From Octopus sinensis (lineage: Eukaryota): a stretch of 64,000 nucleotides of DNA. The position numbers were made by a program, and so were the translations under genes. The notes below the pieces were generated by a model. That model was given only the letters and a program-made list of their open reading frames with translations. It made no database searches and was not told where the DNA came from. The stretch is from contig NC_043009.1 of NCBI RefSeq assembly GCF_006345805.1, positions 24,056,001 through 24,120,000 on the forward strand, written 5' to 3'. Below are positions 38,271-45,125 of this stretch, piece by piece; position 1 is the stretch's first letter; each line of letters begins with the position of its first letter.

Positions 38271-38361
38271 ATGAAGATGATGAACACTCTCATTTATTTG
38301 GCTCTCATGTTCTATCTGGGAACTGGTGCTGTCGTAGATACTGAAACAAAGATAAGTGAAG
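38271..38361 (+). CDS. Gene 1 exon 1: signal peptide of a secreted Cys-rich precursor
   Basis: MKMMNTLIYLALMFYLGTGA|VVDTETKISE then G|GTAGGT (phase 1); 5' UTR and coding sequence similar to 48129-48225. Confidence 0.88.
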
Positions 38362-38689
38362 GTAGGTACTACTTTAGTGTAACACAATACACGCACATAC
38401 ATACTCACGCACACATACACACGCGCGCACACACACACACACAGACGCTCAAACATACACACACACAAACACACACACAACACACAGAGTGTGTAAAAGA
38501 AATCGGAAGGTTGGGTCGCCAATCAGGCTTTTTACGATAGCTTTAAAGCTAGGATTTCTCAGAACCCACTCATACATCTAAATGCACTTAATTTGCTACA
38601 AATGGCAGCAAAACTGTCGGGCAAACAGACTATCTTCCATGAAAATATTCTTTTCTCCTCTAGGCACAAGACCCGAAATTGTGTGGGAG

Positions 38690-39033
38690 GGCACCAGTCG
38701 ATTATATCGACCCAAGTACGCAACTGGTACTTAAATTATCAACCCCGATAGCGTGAAAGGCAAAGTCGACCTCGGTAAAATTTGAACTTGGAACAAAAAT
38801 ACAGACGAAATACTGTTTGGTATTTCGCACCCTGCATGCTAACGTTTCTTATTTCTTTATTACCCACAAGGGGCTAAACATAGAGGGGACAAACAAGGAC
38901 AGAAAAAGGGATTAAGTCGATTACATAGTCCCCGGTGCGTAACTGGTACTTAATTCATCGACCCTGAAAGGATCAAAGGCAAAGTCGACCTCGGCGGAAT
39001 TTGAACTCAGAACGTAAAACAGACGAAATACCG
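38690..39033 (-). mobile_element. SINE family B, two pieces
   Basis: aaggcaaagtcgacctcgg..aatttgaac repeated twice. Confidence 0.75.
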
Positions 39034-39041
39034 TTACACAT

Positions 39042-39094
<53 letters not shown>

Positions 39095-39215
39095 CACACA
39101 CACACACACACAAACATATATATATATATATATATATATATTGGGTTATCCCATAAATAATGCTGTTTTTCAAACTGAAAGAAGTATTAATAACTGCATT
39201 ATTTATTGGATGACC

Positions 39216-39263
<48 letters not shown>

Positions 39264-39492
39264 TTGTGTGTTTGTGTGTCAGAATATAAGAATAAAAGAA
39301 TTCACGTAGTCGCATATAGATTATATCTTTAAAACAATTGTGAGATGTCGACAAAACACGTTGGACAGGTCTTTTCTACTATATCCCTGGGTCGACAAAG
39401 TACCTTGTGAGAGAAATTGGTACACAGAACGTGTATGGAACTCCAACGTATACACACACACACACACACAAATATATACATATATATACATA

Positions 39493-39645
39493 TACGACGA
39501 GCTTCTTTCAGTTTCCGCCCACCACATTCACTCAAAAGGCTTTGGTTGACCTGAAGCTATAGTAGAAGACACTTGCCCAAGTTACCACACAATGGGACTG
39601 AAGCCGGAACCATGTGGTTGGGAAGCAAGCTTCTTACCACTCACC
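39493..39645 (-). mobile_element. SINE family A, head portion
   Basis: Reverse complement of gtggtaagaagcttgcttcccaaccacatggttccggcttcagtccca.. Confidence 0.75.
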
Positions 39646-39850
39646 CTATATATACATACACATTTTTTCTTTCCTTTTTTCTCTCCTGTTTCCTCTCCTT
39701 ATTTCCCTCCTTGTTTTTTCTGTGTCCCTTTCTGTAGAAGAGCGTAGGCTCGAAACGTAAAATGCTTTTTCTATCCCTGAGCGTTATACTAATACATCTG
39801 TTTGTTTTGTACACCACCTGTCTTCGTCTTTTGTTTTTTTCGTAAACTCT

Positions 39851-39900
<50 letters not shown>

Positions 39901-40628
39901 GCATGTATGTATATATTATTTATCTGCGTGTGTATATGTGAGTATCTTTGTGCATGTCTCTAACCGCGTAGCAACCGCTCCTGTTTTGTCTACGTTCCCA
40001 TAGCAAATCGTTTCAACAATACAATAGGCACCATGATATATAAGAAATGAACCCTGGTGTCGAATTTTTCCGAATTTTTCGACCTTTTACTGGTGTCAGT
40101 ATTTTGGAGCCCATGAACACGGTGTTCTGACAAGGGCTAAGCGGTTAAGAAGGCCTCTTCGTTACCTTGTGGTCTTGTCTTCACCGAAGGACCCCTGCAT
40201 TCTCGTGCCCAGTATATTGGGTGAATTAATTCTTTTATAACTTTCTTTCCATGATGTTCTCTAGGAATTGTATTTATTGGTTGATCTGAAGATTCTGATT
40301 CTTACTCGCTTCAAGAAAATAGTGACGGTGACATAATCATCCCAGCGTTATATTAATGATGTCATTAATCTCCCTCTCTCATTTAAATGTATATGAAGAA
40401 TTAGCTTTGTGTGCATGTATGAATACCTGTATATACTCAAACACATCTCTCCCCCCTCTCTCTCTCACTATGTGTGTGAGAGACAGAGAGAGAAAGAGAG
40501 AGAGTGTGCGAGTGTGTGTGCGCGCGTATCTACTTAAGCTAGTTCCTACCTTTCAAGCAATGTTCTTAAATCCAAGCTTAACTTGCTTTCTACCTGCCTA
40601 TATCAATACCTATATATCTACCTATATA

Positions 40629-41189
40629 TTGGGTTGTCTGGAAAGTTCGTGCCGATTTATAGTAGTTTACCTTTCGACTTATTTTAGAACATGTTTGAGT
40701 CCATAAAATAGGATTTGACTACATCTCCATTTAGAGCACAGTTTAAGCTATCTTTTCGTGGAAGAAGGTTTATGTTCCTATAAACTGTGTTAATTCTGTA
40801 ACCCTTTAAAATGGAAGAAAGTTCATTTTCGGCACTTGATGGTTTGGGAATTAGACTAAAATTGCTGCAGCTCGGCTGAGATGTGTTACCCCACCCTCCA
40901 TATTCACCAGATGGTACTCCATCGGATTTCCACTTATTCAGGTCTCTGCAGAATAGTCTTAATGGTAAAAATTTGAGTTTCTTGGATGACGTAAAAAGAT
41001 ACCTTGATGAATTCTTTGTCATGAAACCACCTCAATTCTGGAAAGTGGGTATTTTCAAGTTAAAGGAAAGATGGAGACGCATTGTGCAACAAAATAGTTC
41101 ATATTTGGTTGATTAAAAATGTAATGGCAAGTATTTATTGACCCTTTTCTTTCCTTTAAAAATCGGCACAAACTTTCCGGACAACCCAA
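40629..41189 (+). mobile_element. Internally deleted mariner transposon
   Basis: TIRs TTGGGTTGTCTGGAAAGTTCGTGCCGATTT / AAATCGGCACAAACTTTCCGGACAACCCAA flanked by TA; C-terminal transposase LPHPPYSPDGTPSDFHLFRSLQN..GIFKLKERWRRIV joined to an N-terminal stub. Confidence 0.93.
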
Positions 41190-41344
41190 TATTTATGAAC
41201 CACATTCGCAAATTTCTACATATTTACACACGACACAAATAATTGAATCTCCTACACCATGACACATGAATCACATCAAATATTATATCGATATAATTAA
41301 TTATCTAATTTCATTCATTTTCATTTACTTCTTTACATTTACAG

Positions 41345-42875: not shown

Positions 42876-42944
42876 CAATCTCGCTGTTTATCTCTCGCCC
42901 TCTCTCTTCCTCTCTCACTGCCTAGAGCAGAAATGGATATTTTG

Positions 42945-43095
42945 TCTGTCTTTACGTTTTGAGGTCAAATTCCGCCGTGGTCGACTTTGCGTTTCATCCT
43001 TTCGCGGTCGATAGATTAAGTACCAGTTATGTACTGGAGTTGATTTAATCGACTGGCCCCTAAAACATTTCGGGCCTTGTACCGAGAGTAGAATA
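42945..43095 (+). mobile_element. SINE family B, partial
   Basis: ggtcaaattccgccgtggtcgactttgcgtttcatcctttcgcggtcgatagattaagtaccagtt. Confidence 0.75.
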
Positions 43096-43170
43096 GATTA
43101 TTTTGCTGCTTTCAGCTACAGGCTGAGTATACGCTGGATCGCTAAAGGTTTAATTATATTTCCATTTCAG

Positions 43171-43254
43171 TCTGCATCACTATGACACTTCGTAGAGGCG
43201 CAATAACGTTCAGGCTGACTGTCGGTAGACGCACATTGATGTCAAGAACTTTCC
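43171..43254 (+). CDS. Gene 1 exon 3
   Basis: ttccatttcag| acceptor, 84 nt (phase 1-1), (F)CITMTLRRGAITFRLTVGRRTLMSRTF, donor C|GTGAGT; keeps the frame between exons 2 and 4. Confidence 0.82.
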
Positions 43255-43474
43255 GTGAGTATTTTTACTGCATTATTCTCTGCCTTTCATATTTCATTTA
43301 TTTAAGTCACTTGACTGGGGCCGTGCCGGGGCACCGCCTTGAAGACTTTATTACTCAGATAAATCGAACTTCTTTTTCTTGAAGCATAGTAATTATTCTA
43401 ACAGTTTCTTATGCCGAACCGTTAAGTCAAGTAGGCATAAACTCACCAGCACCGGTTGCCAAGCAGTGATTGTG

Positions 43475-43543
<69 letters not shown>

Positions 43544-43745
43544 TACACACAGAAACTCAAAAAGAAGAAACTCCAGGGCTTCATTCGATGGAGGAGCTCG
43601 CGCTTAGTGACATCAACGCGCTGTAGAAGCACCTGTATTTATATATCCATGTATACATACGTACATAACATAATACATGCATTTATACATACATACATAC
43701 GTACATACATACATACATACGTACGTACATACATACATACATACA

Positions 43746-43779
<34 letters not shown>

Positions 43780-44514
43780 CATACATACAAGGGGCGTATA
43801 TCCCGGGTGTAGTAGGTGCGCGCTGCACACCCATCTAAAATGATAAATTCCTTATAAATATTAATCTTACTCATTAATTTAATCGCAAATCTTAATGGAA
43901 AAGTTTTGTTATACCTCTGCTTTAAAGTTGGTGACATTGGGTGTGGAAGTACACTCAATACAACAACCACCATGCACCACTGATACCTACCTACCTACCT
44001 ACCTCCTTAATTCTTCTGTCCCTCTGCTTCTACTTCTCTCTCTTCTCTTCCCACGTGACCTGCTCTTTCTTTCTGGATATGACCCTGGTCCGTGCAACAT
44101 CGATATTTTTCCCTGTGTTTGTGAAACTTTTGTATCCCACACGCGCCAGCTTAATTTAATTCGTCCTTAGTCGAAAGACACCTGTTGTTATGTCCTGTTA
44201 TTATTGTATATTTTTATTGTATTTATATTTGTGTAACATTGTCCGTTTTTTTCCGTCCTAGTTTTTGTATATATTTGATGCTTTCTTCTAAGGAATGTAA
44301 TGCTTTTAGCTTAGTTTTTTCCTTGGGACCGGCTAGATTGGAGCAATCTCAAGAATAATCAGTCGAAATTGCGAGGATAAACTGGTTCTTGACTGAAGAT
44401 AGAAAACTTCGAATGACCCGTCCTTGTTTTCTTTGTATCGTCTATCTGGATGTTTTGTTGTCCCCTTTTGTATCACCTGGTTGTCCGGATGTTTTGTGTT
44501 CTTGTCCCATTTTG

Positions 44515-44554
<40 letters not shown>

Positions 44555-44678
44555 CGGCGTACGTACACTTTGTTCACTTACATACATACATACATACATA
44601 CATATATACATACATACATACGTGCATGCATGCATACATACATACATACATACATACATACATACATACATACATACA

Positions 44679-44710
<32 letters not shown>

Positions 44711-44790
44711 CACTTATATAAATATACATGTATACATATATTTGTGGTTTTCTCCAGTGTCTAATATCTATGTCTATATCTATTTTATAG

Positions 44791-45125
44791 GAGGCAGATT
44801 CTCCAAAACCTTCAACTTTCATCTTGGAGTTGTAAATGTAGGCTTCAGAATATCCGTAGTAAGTTTCACACGTCACAGCGTTAAGATTTGTTTCGGGATA
44901 TCTTACCGTGTTTTCTTTCACCATCGCTCTAAAAGTCTCGGATGCACCACCAAACACTTTCTTTCCAATGAAAATAGCCCATTGGACGACATGGATGATG
45001 TGATGATGAATGCTAACTCATTTTTGGCGTCCCAAGTTATCGATGCTGAGAAACTTTCCAGTTTGGAATACATTGATGAAGAAAACCAAAGCGAAAATCC
45101 TCTCGTTTGGAAAATGAATGCCTAG
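44791..45125 (+). CDS. Gene 1 exon 4 (terminal): end of cationic core plus acidic tail
   Basis: tattttatag| acceptor, (R)GRFSKTFNFHLGVVNVGFRISVVSFTRHSVKICFGISYRVFFHHRSKSLGCTTKHF-LSNENSPLDDMDD..WKMNA-TAG; AATAAA at 45190 and 45324. Confidence 0.85.

Follow-up and report, generated by a model that had tools for sequence, protein, structure and literature searches.

A charge-segregated protein with a divergent DUF4773 core in Octopus sinensis: a candidate charge-masked secreted polycation

In the eosinophil precursor proMBP, an acidic pro-segment offsets a folded, Arg-rich domain of ~12-14 kDa, which has a pI of ~11 and a C-type lectin fold. The precursors of alpha-defensins, of the mussel mytilins and myticins and of Hydra arminin and periculin likewise combine a signal peptide with a disulfide-bonded part of cationic character and an anionic segment that compensates its charge, and their mature peptides of 3-6 kDa are released at defined sites. 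Small secreted metazoan proteins of ~140-270 amino acids (aa) also make up the Pfam family DUF4773 (PF15998), for which no function was stated in the literature found to mention the domain. The present analysis deals with the Octopus sinensis gene LOC115218395 (hereafter gene A), which is located in a stretch of 64,000 nucleotides (nt) of contig NC_043009.1 (assembly GCF_006345805.1, positions 24,056,001 to 24,120,000 of the forward strand). This whole stretch is referred to as the window, and all coordinates are counted from its first letter. Gene A encodes a protein in which a polycationic core, assigned to DUF4773 as a divergent member, is placed between two acidic flanks. This layout hints at a protein that serves in defence or binds polyanions and whose charge is masked; the reading as an antimicrobial with propieces, proposed in a preliminary description of this DNA, is inferred.

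Charge layout and gene model

The protein encoded by gene A consists of 241 aa, corresponding to ~25 kDa after removal of the signal. A hydrophobic N-terminal stretch (residues 6-17, Kyte-Doolittle values up to 2.1) is carried on an exon of its own and kept in the paralogues, and on the basis of this signal-like N-terminus, and of the detection of a paralogue in skin mucus (see below), the protein is probably secreted. It is followed by an N-flank of 61 aa (residues 21-81) with 18 Asp/Glu (D/E) versus 4 Lys/Arg (K/R), a core of 106 aa (residues 82-187, MGCRWSGN..LGCTTKHF) with 16 R, 4 K, 6 Cys and no D/E at all, and a C-tail of 54 aa (residues 188-241) with 12 D/E versus 2 K, residue counts that agree with those of the preliminary description. 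The resulting net charges are +20 for the core (12.2 kDa) and -13 and -10 for the flanks, with calculated pI values of 11.9 for the core and 4.05 for either flank, so that opposite charges add up to about -4 in a mature chain of pI 5.8. This layout is not a product of chance, because a charge of +20 in a stretch of 104 residues was never reached when the mature chain was shuffled (0/200,000; mean 3.7, maximum 17); in addition, the probability that a given block of 104 residues is free of all 30 D/E of the chain amounts to 7e-10.

In comparison with the systems named above, gene A resembles proMBP by an acidic segment of opposite, balancing charge next to a basic domain of the given size and pI. 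The two proteins are not homologous, however, since a C-type lectin fold stands against the predicted all-beta DUF4773 meander of gene A, and the octopus protein features two acidic segments, which enclose the core, without evidence of cleavage. With the precursors of defensins, mytilins, myticins, arminin and periculin, gene A has in common the signal peptide, a cationic part with predicted disulfide bonds and a compensating anionic segment; it differs from them in its long core (106 aa), in the lack of a processing motif and in the absence of any sequence or fold similarity.

The gene is composed of four exons on the forward strand, and the following features were assigned:

38155..38162, + strand: TATA box with the sequence TATAAATA, assigned to gene A (LOC115218395) and found by motif search ~55 nt 5' of the first base of the orthologous cDNA (38211)
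38211..38361, + strand: exon 1, with 5' untranslated region (UTR; at least 38211-38270) and coding sequence (CDS; 38271-38361); donor GTAGGT
41345..41560, + strand: exon 2, acidic N-flank and start of the DUF4773 core (C84, W86, C93, C94); acceptor ...tttacag, donor GTAAGT
43171..43254, + strand: exon 3, 28 core codons (C104; strands beta3-beta5)
44791..45125, + strand: CDS of exon 4, remaining core (C164, C182, to aa 187), acidic C-tail (aa 188-241) and stop
45126..45345, + strand: 3' UTR, with AATAAA at 45190 and 45324; orthologous cDNA aligned to 45292, end coordinate estimated
41514..44951, + strand: genomic span of the polycationic core of 106 aa (DUF4773, aa 82-187), split by introns 2 and 3

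Exon 1 codes for aa 1-30 plus 1 nt and thus comprises the signal-like peptide together with the earliest acidic residues. Each of the three introns is in phase 1, starts with GT and ends with AG preceded by a pyrimidine-rich tract, and the spliced CDS (91 + 216 + 84 + 335 = 726 nt) forms a single open frame of 241 codons and a TAG stop. The four-exon model with GT-AG sites and phase-1 introns, as put forward in the preliminary description, coincides with the public annotation: the spliced translation is identical at every residue to XP_029644042.1, the 'uncharacterized protein' of LOC115218395, whose annotated span of 6855 nt on CM016871.1 (GCA_006345805.1) equals 38271-45125. O. vulgaris and O. 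bimaculoides (LOC106872507) have models of 241 aa as well, with 98 % and 81 % identity, respectively. Gene A is therefore not new to databases, as NCBI holds models of equal length for three Octopus species. In keeping with its designation as uncharacterised, none of its LOC, XP and UniProt identifiers was mentioned in the literature looked up by identifier, and the Pfam and InterPro accessions yielded no paper either.

Splicing is documented by a 961-nt RNA-seq contig of O. bimaculoides (L002; Logan SRR7158636), which contains the entire open reading frame (ORF) of the orthologue without introns. Aligned to the window, it falls into the four blocks 38211-38361, 41343-41560, 43166-43255 and 44791-45292, whose edges at 38361, 41560, 43254/5 and 44791 are those of the predicted exons. 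No citing paper turned up when the literature was looked up by the run number SRR7158636. Gene A is a genuine, already annotated gene, and its orthologue is expressed. That the ORF track of the window does not display it as one unit is true, but merely reflects a prokaryote-style ORF listing applied to a spliced eukaryotic gene. The position of the TATA box is kept in O. bimaculoides and in the neighbouring paralogue (gene B, see below); the element probably serves as promoter and, in the account favoured here, gene A would be TATA-driven.

Family assignment, conservation and predicted fold

A Pfam search with the gene A protein yielded a single weak match, to DUF4773 (E 0.005, 17.7 bits; residues 91-173 against profile positions 9-101/118). 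By itself, the protein remains below the gathering cut-off of this family (27 bits), and the O. bimaculoides orthologue gave no DUF4773 match. So divergent is the Octopus clade that an hmmsearch with a profile made from the cores of the orthologues, run against 1.84 billion representative proteins, found only about eight relatives. These are the Octopus proteins LOC115218502, LOC106872505, LOC106872506 and LOC106876287 (the latter named 'DUF4773 domain-containing' in UniProt), one protein of Argonauta hians, and P0007 and P0011 (E 5e-5 and 1e-3). P0007 and P0011 are proteins with 8 Cys from RNA-seq assemblies, represented by the Logan contigs L003-L006 (SRR3436858, ERR868086, SRR24189504, SRR29271477), and the identical P0007 sequence occurs in three unrelated runs. 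With 37 bits and 33.3 bits, respectively, both exceed the Pfam cut-off and cover profile positions 2-112/118. In a comparison by hhalign, the orthologue group of Octopus and Argonauta was linked to P0007/P0011 with 98.6 % probability (E 1.1e-15, 107 columns). Because these relatives pass the cut-off and hhalign connects them to the orthologues, the core is taken as a divergent DUF4773 domain, filed there on transitive evidence; judged by its sequence, it is not a new fold family. Two further matches of the representative search, P0008 and P0010, were rejected as spurious, being repeat proteins with only 40 aligned residues. A word-indexed protein search returned only two orthologue clusters for the full-length query, one match for the core alignment and, for P0007, only P0007 itself.

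No variation occurs at C84, C93, C94, C104, C164, C182, W86 or G181 among 10 sequences, which include P0007 and P0011. From the six invariant Cys, three disulfides are predicted, whose pairing is conjectural. The length of 241 aa and the hydrophobic N-terminal segment agree with the size and secretion given for DUF4773 members, and the gene A core and this family are homologous over essentially the whole domain, of a similar size class and preceded by a signal-like N-terminal segment. The combination of a +20 core without D/E and twin acidic flanks is not a property of all members.

The charge pattern is kept in the closest relatives. The cores of O. vulgaris (+21) and O. bimaculoides (+20) are both devoid of D/E, the latter at 74 % identity to that of O. 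sinensis, and the core of the Argonauta hians protein, at only 28 % identity, again carries +20 without D/E and is accompanied by flanks of -12 and -20. P0007 and P0011, the most cationic relatives, feature cores of +23 and +27, both with 0 D/E, and N-flanks of -21 and -22. Acidic residues are hence excluded across 104-109 core residues in six sequences. A loss of charge segregation among orthologues had been named in advance as an outcome that would speak against the proposal; as the segregation is kept, with cores of +20 to +27, 0 D/E and acidic flanks, this test does not refute it. The Octopus paralogues LOC106872505, LOC106872506, LOC115218502, LOC106876287 and A0A0L8GLC6 share with gene A the signal peptide on exon 1, the helix motif of the N-flank, the framework of six Cys and Trp and the tandem arrangement, and their intron phases are alike at the first two exon junctions (seen in gene B). 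Unlike gene A, they contain acidic residues in their cores, which reach only +4 to +14, and their flanks are weaker (-3 to -10); the paralogues P0004 and P0015 terminate directly after the domain and possess no tail.

Between O. sinensis and O. bimaculoides, the ratio of nonsynonymous (dN) to synonymous (dS) substitution rates is 0.37 overall; split by segment, the values are 0.43 (core), 0.41 (N-flank) and 0.21 (C-tail). As dN/dS is below 1 in all segments, the whole protein is under purifying selection, and positive selection on the core was rejected on account of its value of 0.43. The core is the fastest segment in terms of dN (0.157) and the C-tail the slowest (0.023). The dS of the C-tail is also low (0.109 vs 0.368 in the core), which may reflect a nucleotide-level constraint or nothing more than small numbers.

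Structures of the full-length protein and of the core alone were predicted with AlphaFold2 (AF2) from a small alignment. In the full-length prediction, the core reached a predicted local distance difference test score (pLDDT) of ~85, as opposed to <50 for the flanks. The core alone was modelled with a pLDDT of 89.8 and a predicted template modelling score (pTM) of 0.78 as nine consecutive beta-strands with tight turns between them. Hydrophobic residues mostly alternate with polar or cationic ones along these strands, and the modelled sheet would therefore have two faces, one greasy and one lined with Arg, Thr and Ser. A Foldseek search against the PDB gave no significant match (best E 0.03-0.07, template modelling (TM) scores of 0.29-0.37, root-mean-square deviation (rmsd) of 6-14 Å); the top, non-significant matches were up-and-down barrels of 8-10 strands, avidin- and fatty-acid-binding protein (FABP)-like. 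Calycin-like up-and-down beta-barrels (avidin, FABP, lipocalin) thus did not superpose significantly on the core in the PDB, and BFVD contained no significant relative of it by Foldseek either. Sequence searches of the PDB were empty, and hence no solved structure was matched. Likewise, no characterised antimicrobial, toxin or lectin family or fold was matched in Pfam (DUF4773 only), the PDB or Foldseek searches. The core is accordingly predicted, with confidence on the part of the model, to be a nine-strand beta meander without a PDB counterpart.

Proposed charge masking and competing accounts

The account that is tentatively favoured here, at somewhat less than an even chance, is that of a charge-masked secreted polycation, whose acidic flanks would neutralise the DUF4773 core in cis and whose core would meet polyanions outside the cell. 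During secretory passage and storage, the flanks would mask the polycationic domain; outside the cell, the domain would be freed, either through proteolytic cleavage or because stronger polyanions compete with the flanks, and could then bind anionic surfaces (microbial envelopes, mucins, glycosaminoglycans) or nucleic acids. The gene A protein would in this case act as a host-defence or mucosal effector analogous to eosinophil proMBP. Masking in cis, release and target are each to be read as conditional steps. A wider proposal, which we consider possible and rather doubtful, is that charge-segregated DUF4773 proteins may constitute an unrecognised class of polycationic host-defence proteins that are large (~12 kDa), all-beta and stapled by disulfides, and that acidic segments hold inert in cis; they would be a molluscan counterpart of proMBP with a fold that has no solved relative.

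Reports on other family members provide circumstantial support. The Octopus paralogue A0A0L8GLC6 was detected in the skin-mucus proteome of O. vulgaris and was lower in senescent animals, an oyster DUF4773 gene ranks among the top-ten markers of macrophage-like haemocytes, and in the pleuropodial secretion of a locust a DUF4773 transcript belongs to the most abundant ones, alongside lysozymes. The gene A protein itself agrees with cationic host-defence precursors in its signal peptide and in having a cationic part whose charge is offset by an anionic one. Masking is further supported by a core of +20 next to flanks that sum to -23, by cores kept free of D/E in Octopus, Argonauta, P0007 and P0011, by the purifying selection on the protein and by an inverse correlation of core charge with the summed charge of the flanks (r = -0.75), a coefficient that is based on only 8-9 family members and not corrected for phylogeny.

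Several observations weigh against charge masking by flanks that are later shed. The acidic flanks, which the preliminary description had termed propieces, are real, but their removal is unsupported, as neither core boundary of the gene A protein features a dibasic or furin-type site. No KR, RR or RxxR occurs at residues 78-84 or 185-190, the sole dibasic pairs (RR110, RR122) are located within the core, and the boundary residues vary among the relatives, in which no such site was seen there either when the alignment was read by eye. The processing site of cationic host-defence precursors with an anionic propiece is accordingly missing from this protein. Furthermore, the flanks were not docked on the core with any confidence in the full-length AF2 prediction. 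The C-tail (window 44952-45122) is the best-conserved segment, with 94 % identity between O. sinensis and O. bimaculoides, and so looks like a functional module rather than a disposable spacer. The N-flank contains an acidic amphipathic helix motif of the consensus LEEMIEKLxVD (LEEMIxKLxVD) at residues 36-50 (window about 41360-41405), for which AF2 predicts a helix with low confidence. Since this motif is present in every cephalopod family member, including the paralogues with weakly charged cores, the flanks may have functions of their own. Finally, no accession of gene A was listed in the searched supplements of octopus proteome data on skin mucus and ink.

Some of these observations would be expected from an uncut block polyampholyte, in which the charge blocks drive self-association or the cross-linking of mucins or matrix, and the protein would be a structural or rheological part of mucus, egg coats or adhesive secretions. 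Block boundaries without cleavage motifs, an overall charge near neutral combined with extreme segregation, the strong conservation of the C-tail and the occurrence of a paralogue in skin mucus are all in line with such a role. Nevertheless, we regard it as unlikely: the layout of three blocks is not needed by the family, as is evident from the tail-less paralogues P0004 and P0015, and the repeats or low-complexity modules typical of matrix proteins are lacking.

Slightly less likely still is a carrier or sensor, for which the DUF4773 meander would close to an up-and-down barrel or sandwich and bind a hydrophobic or anionic ligand (lipid, lipopolysaccharide-like, pheromone), with the cationic surface serving for docking only. 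The amphipathic strands with one hydrophobic face point in this direction, as do avidins and fatty-acid-binding proteins as the sole, non-significant resemblances in the PDB. The Foldseek values (E >= 0.03, low TM, large rmsd) and the absence of a sequence match to solved structures argue against it, and the total exclusion of acidic residues in six cores would be left unexplained.

A venom or salivary-gland protein acting on prey is quite improbable. A secreted-type, fast-evolving protein with predicted disulfide richness that is encoded in a tandem cluster would suit this role, but no known toxin family was matched in Pfam or PDB, dN/dS is <1 throughout, and the reports on related DUF4773 genes concern mucus, haemocytes and embryonic glands of insects, not venom. 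A prohormone or neuropeptide precursor, from which acidic spacers are cut to leave a Cys-rich hormone, would explain the signal peptide, the acidic spacers and the Cys-rich middle. It is nonetheless highly improbable, as conserved dibasic or monobasic motifs, the hallmark of such precursors, were not found at the boundaries, the core is a beta domain of 106 aa, and the family is found widely in secretory tissues that are not neural. An annotation artefact or decaying pseudogene, as might be suspected at a locus dense in satellites, elements resembling short interspersed elements (SINEs) and fragments of long interspersed elements (LINEs), deserves next to no credence in view of the intact ORF of equal length in three Octopus species, the spliced orthologue cDNA, a dN/dS of 0.37 and the invariant framework of Cys and Trp.

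Genomic surroundings and relevance for the DUF4773 family

Gene A lies in a cluster of cephalopod paralogues arranged in tandem. The O. bimaculoides members LOC106872505, -506 and -507 bear consecutive identifiers, and the orthologue of gene A in that species is flanked by a last exon of the family upstream and by LOC106872505 downstream. The orthologue of the latter, gene B, follows gene A in the window:

48129..48225, + strand: exon 1 of gene B (orthologue of O. bimaculoides LOC106872505), tblastn identity of 59-91 %; phase 1, donor GTAAGT; the next annotated gene starts here
58106..58291, + strand: exon 2 of gene B, coding for the acidic N-flank and for the C-x-W...CC start of the DUF4773 core

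Gene B has the exon phases of gene A, a similar 5' UTR, a TATA box at 48025 and a first intron of ~10 kb, and its product comprises 419 aa in the O. sinensis annotation. These two exons were the only further family exons within the window, where the later exons of gene B were not found. Repeated tblastn matches of 19 aa at 15-36 kb were discarded, as they reflect chance similarity to a satellite unit and are not family exons.

This satellite extends over 21.7 kb (15073-36821) upstream of gene A and consists of at least 37 head-to-tail copies of a unit of ~556 bp, with 98-100 % identity; it was missed by TRF because its period exceeds 500. Its last copy (35972-36532) is inverted and shows 94 % identity, and the array ends ~1.3 kb upstream of the TATA box of gene A. 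ORFs of retrotransposons without long terminal repeats (non-LTR) are located at 45764-47299 (-), 53859-56814 (+) and 59009-60442 (+), i.e., one between genes A and B and two within introns of gene B, with matches to RVT_1 (1e-30, 4e-21 and 1e-24) and to the endonuclease Exo_endo_phos (1e-7); LINE fragments are present in the introns of gene B, and its intron 1 is packed with retrotransposon fragments.

Intron 1 of gene A harbours a mariner-like deletion derivative of ~570 bp (40627-41195) with inverted ends of ~30 bp, TATTGGGTTGTCYGGAAAGTTYGTGCCGATTT. Its remnant ORF (40883-41116, 77 aa) resembles the C-terminus of a transposase and had no Pfam match at 1e-3. A SINE-like repeat of ~150 bp is present in seven copies of 75-82 % identity, among them three within the first two introns of gene A at 38656-38830, 38915-39035 and 42938-43088 (-), and 10978-11316, 14787-14884 and 49520-49669 (-) elsewhere. 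In addition, a large part of the three introns of gene A is taken up by dense microsatellites of the types (CA)n, (TA)n, (CTAT)n/(CTGT)n and (CATA)n, e.g., at 38380-38480, 39040-39140, 42020-42250, 42556-42870, 43480-43540, 43640-43790 and 44525-44715, from which many spurious ORFs result.

With a public gene model, and with the charge architecture also present in relatives that Pfam recognises, part of what is described here is already known, and gene A is at present an annotated hypothetical protein with a striking conserved charge pattern and a candidate functional role only. The DUF4773 domain appears in data sets of mollusc skin mucus and immune cells and in the embryonic gland secretion of an insect, all without an assigned role. 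If the masking idea holds true, gene A would be the first functional handle on this domain, and the few cephalopod immune effectors listed so far would be joined by a structurally new type; if the host-defence class is real, the metazoan-wide DUF4773 family would gain its first function. Even without masking, these proteins form a natural series in which one fold carries core charges from +4 to +27 together with compensating flanks, and this series would be useful for studying how producing cells stay unharmed by the polycations they secrete.

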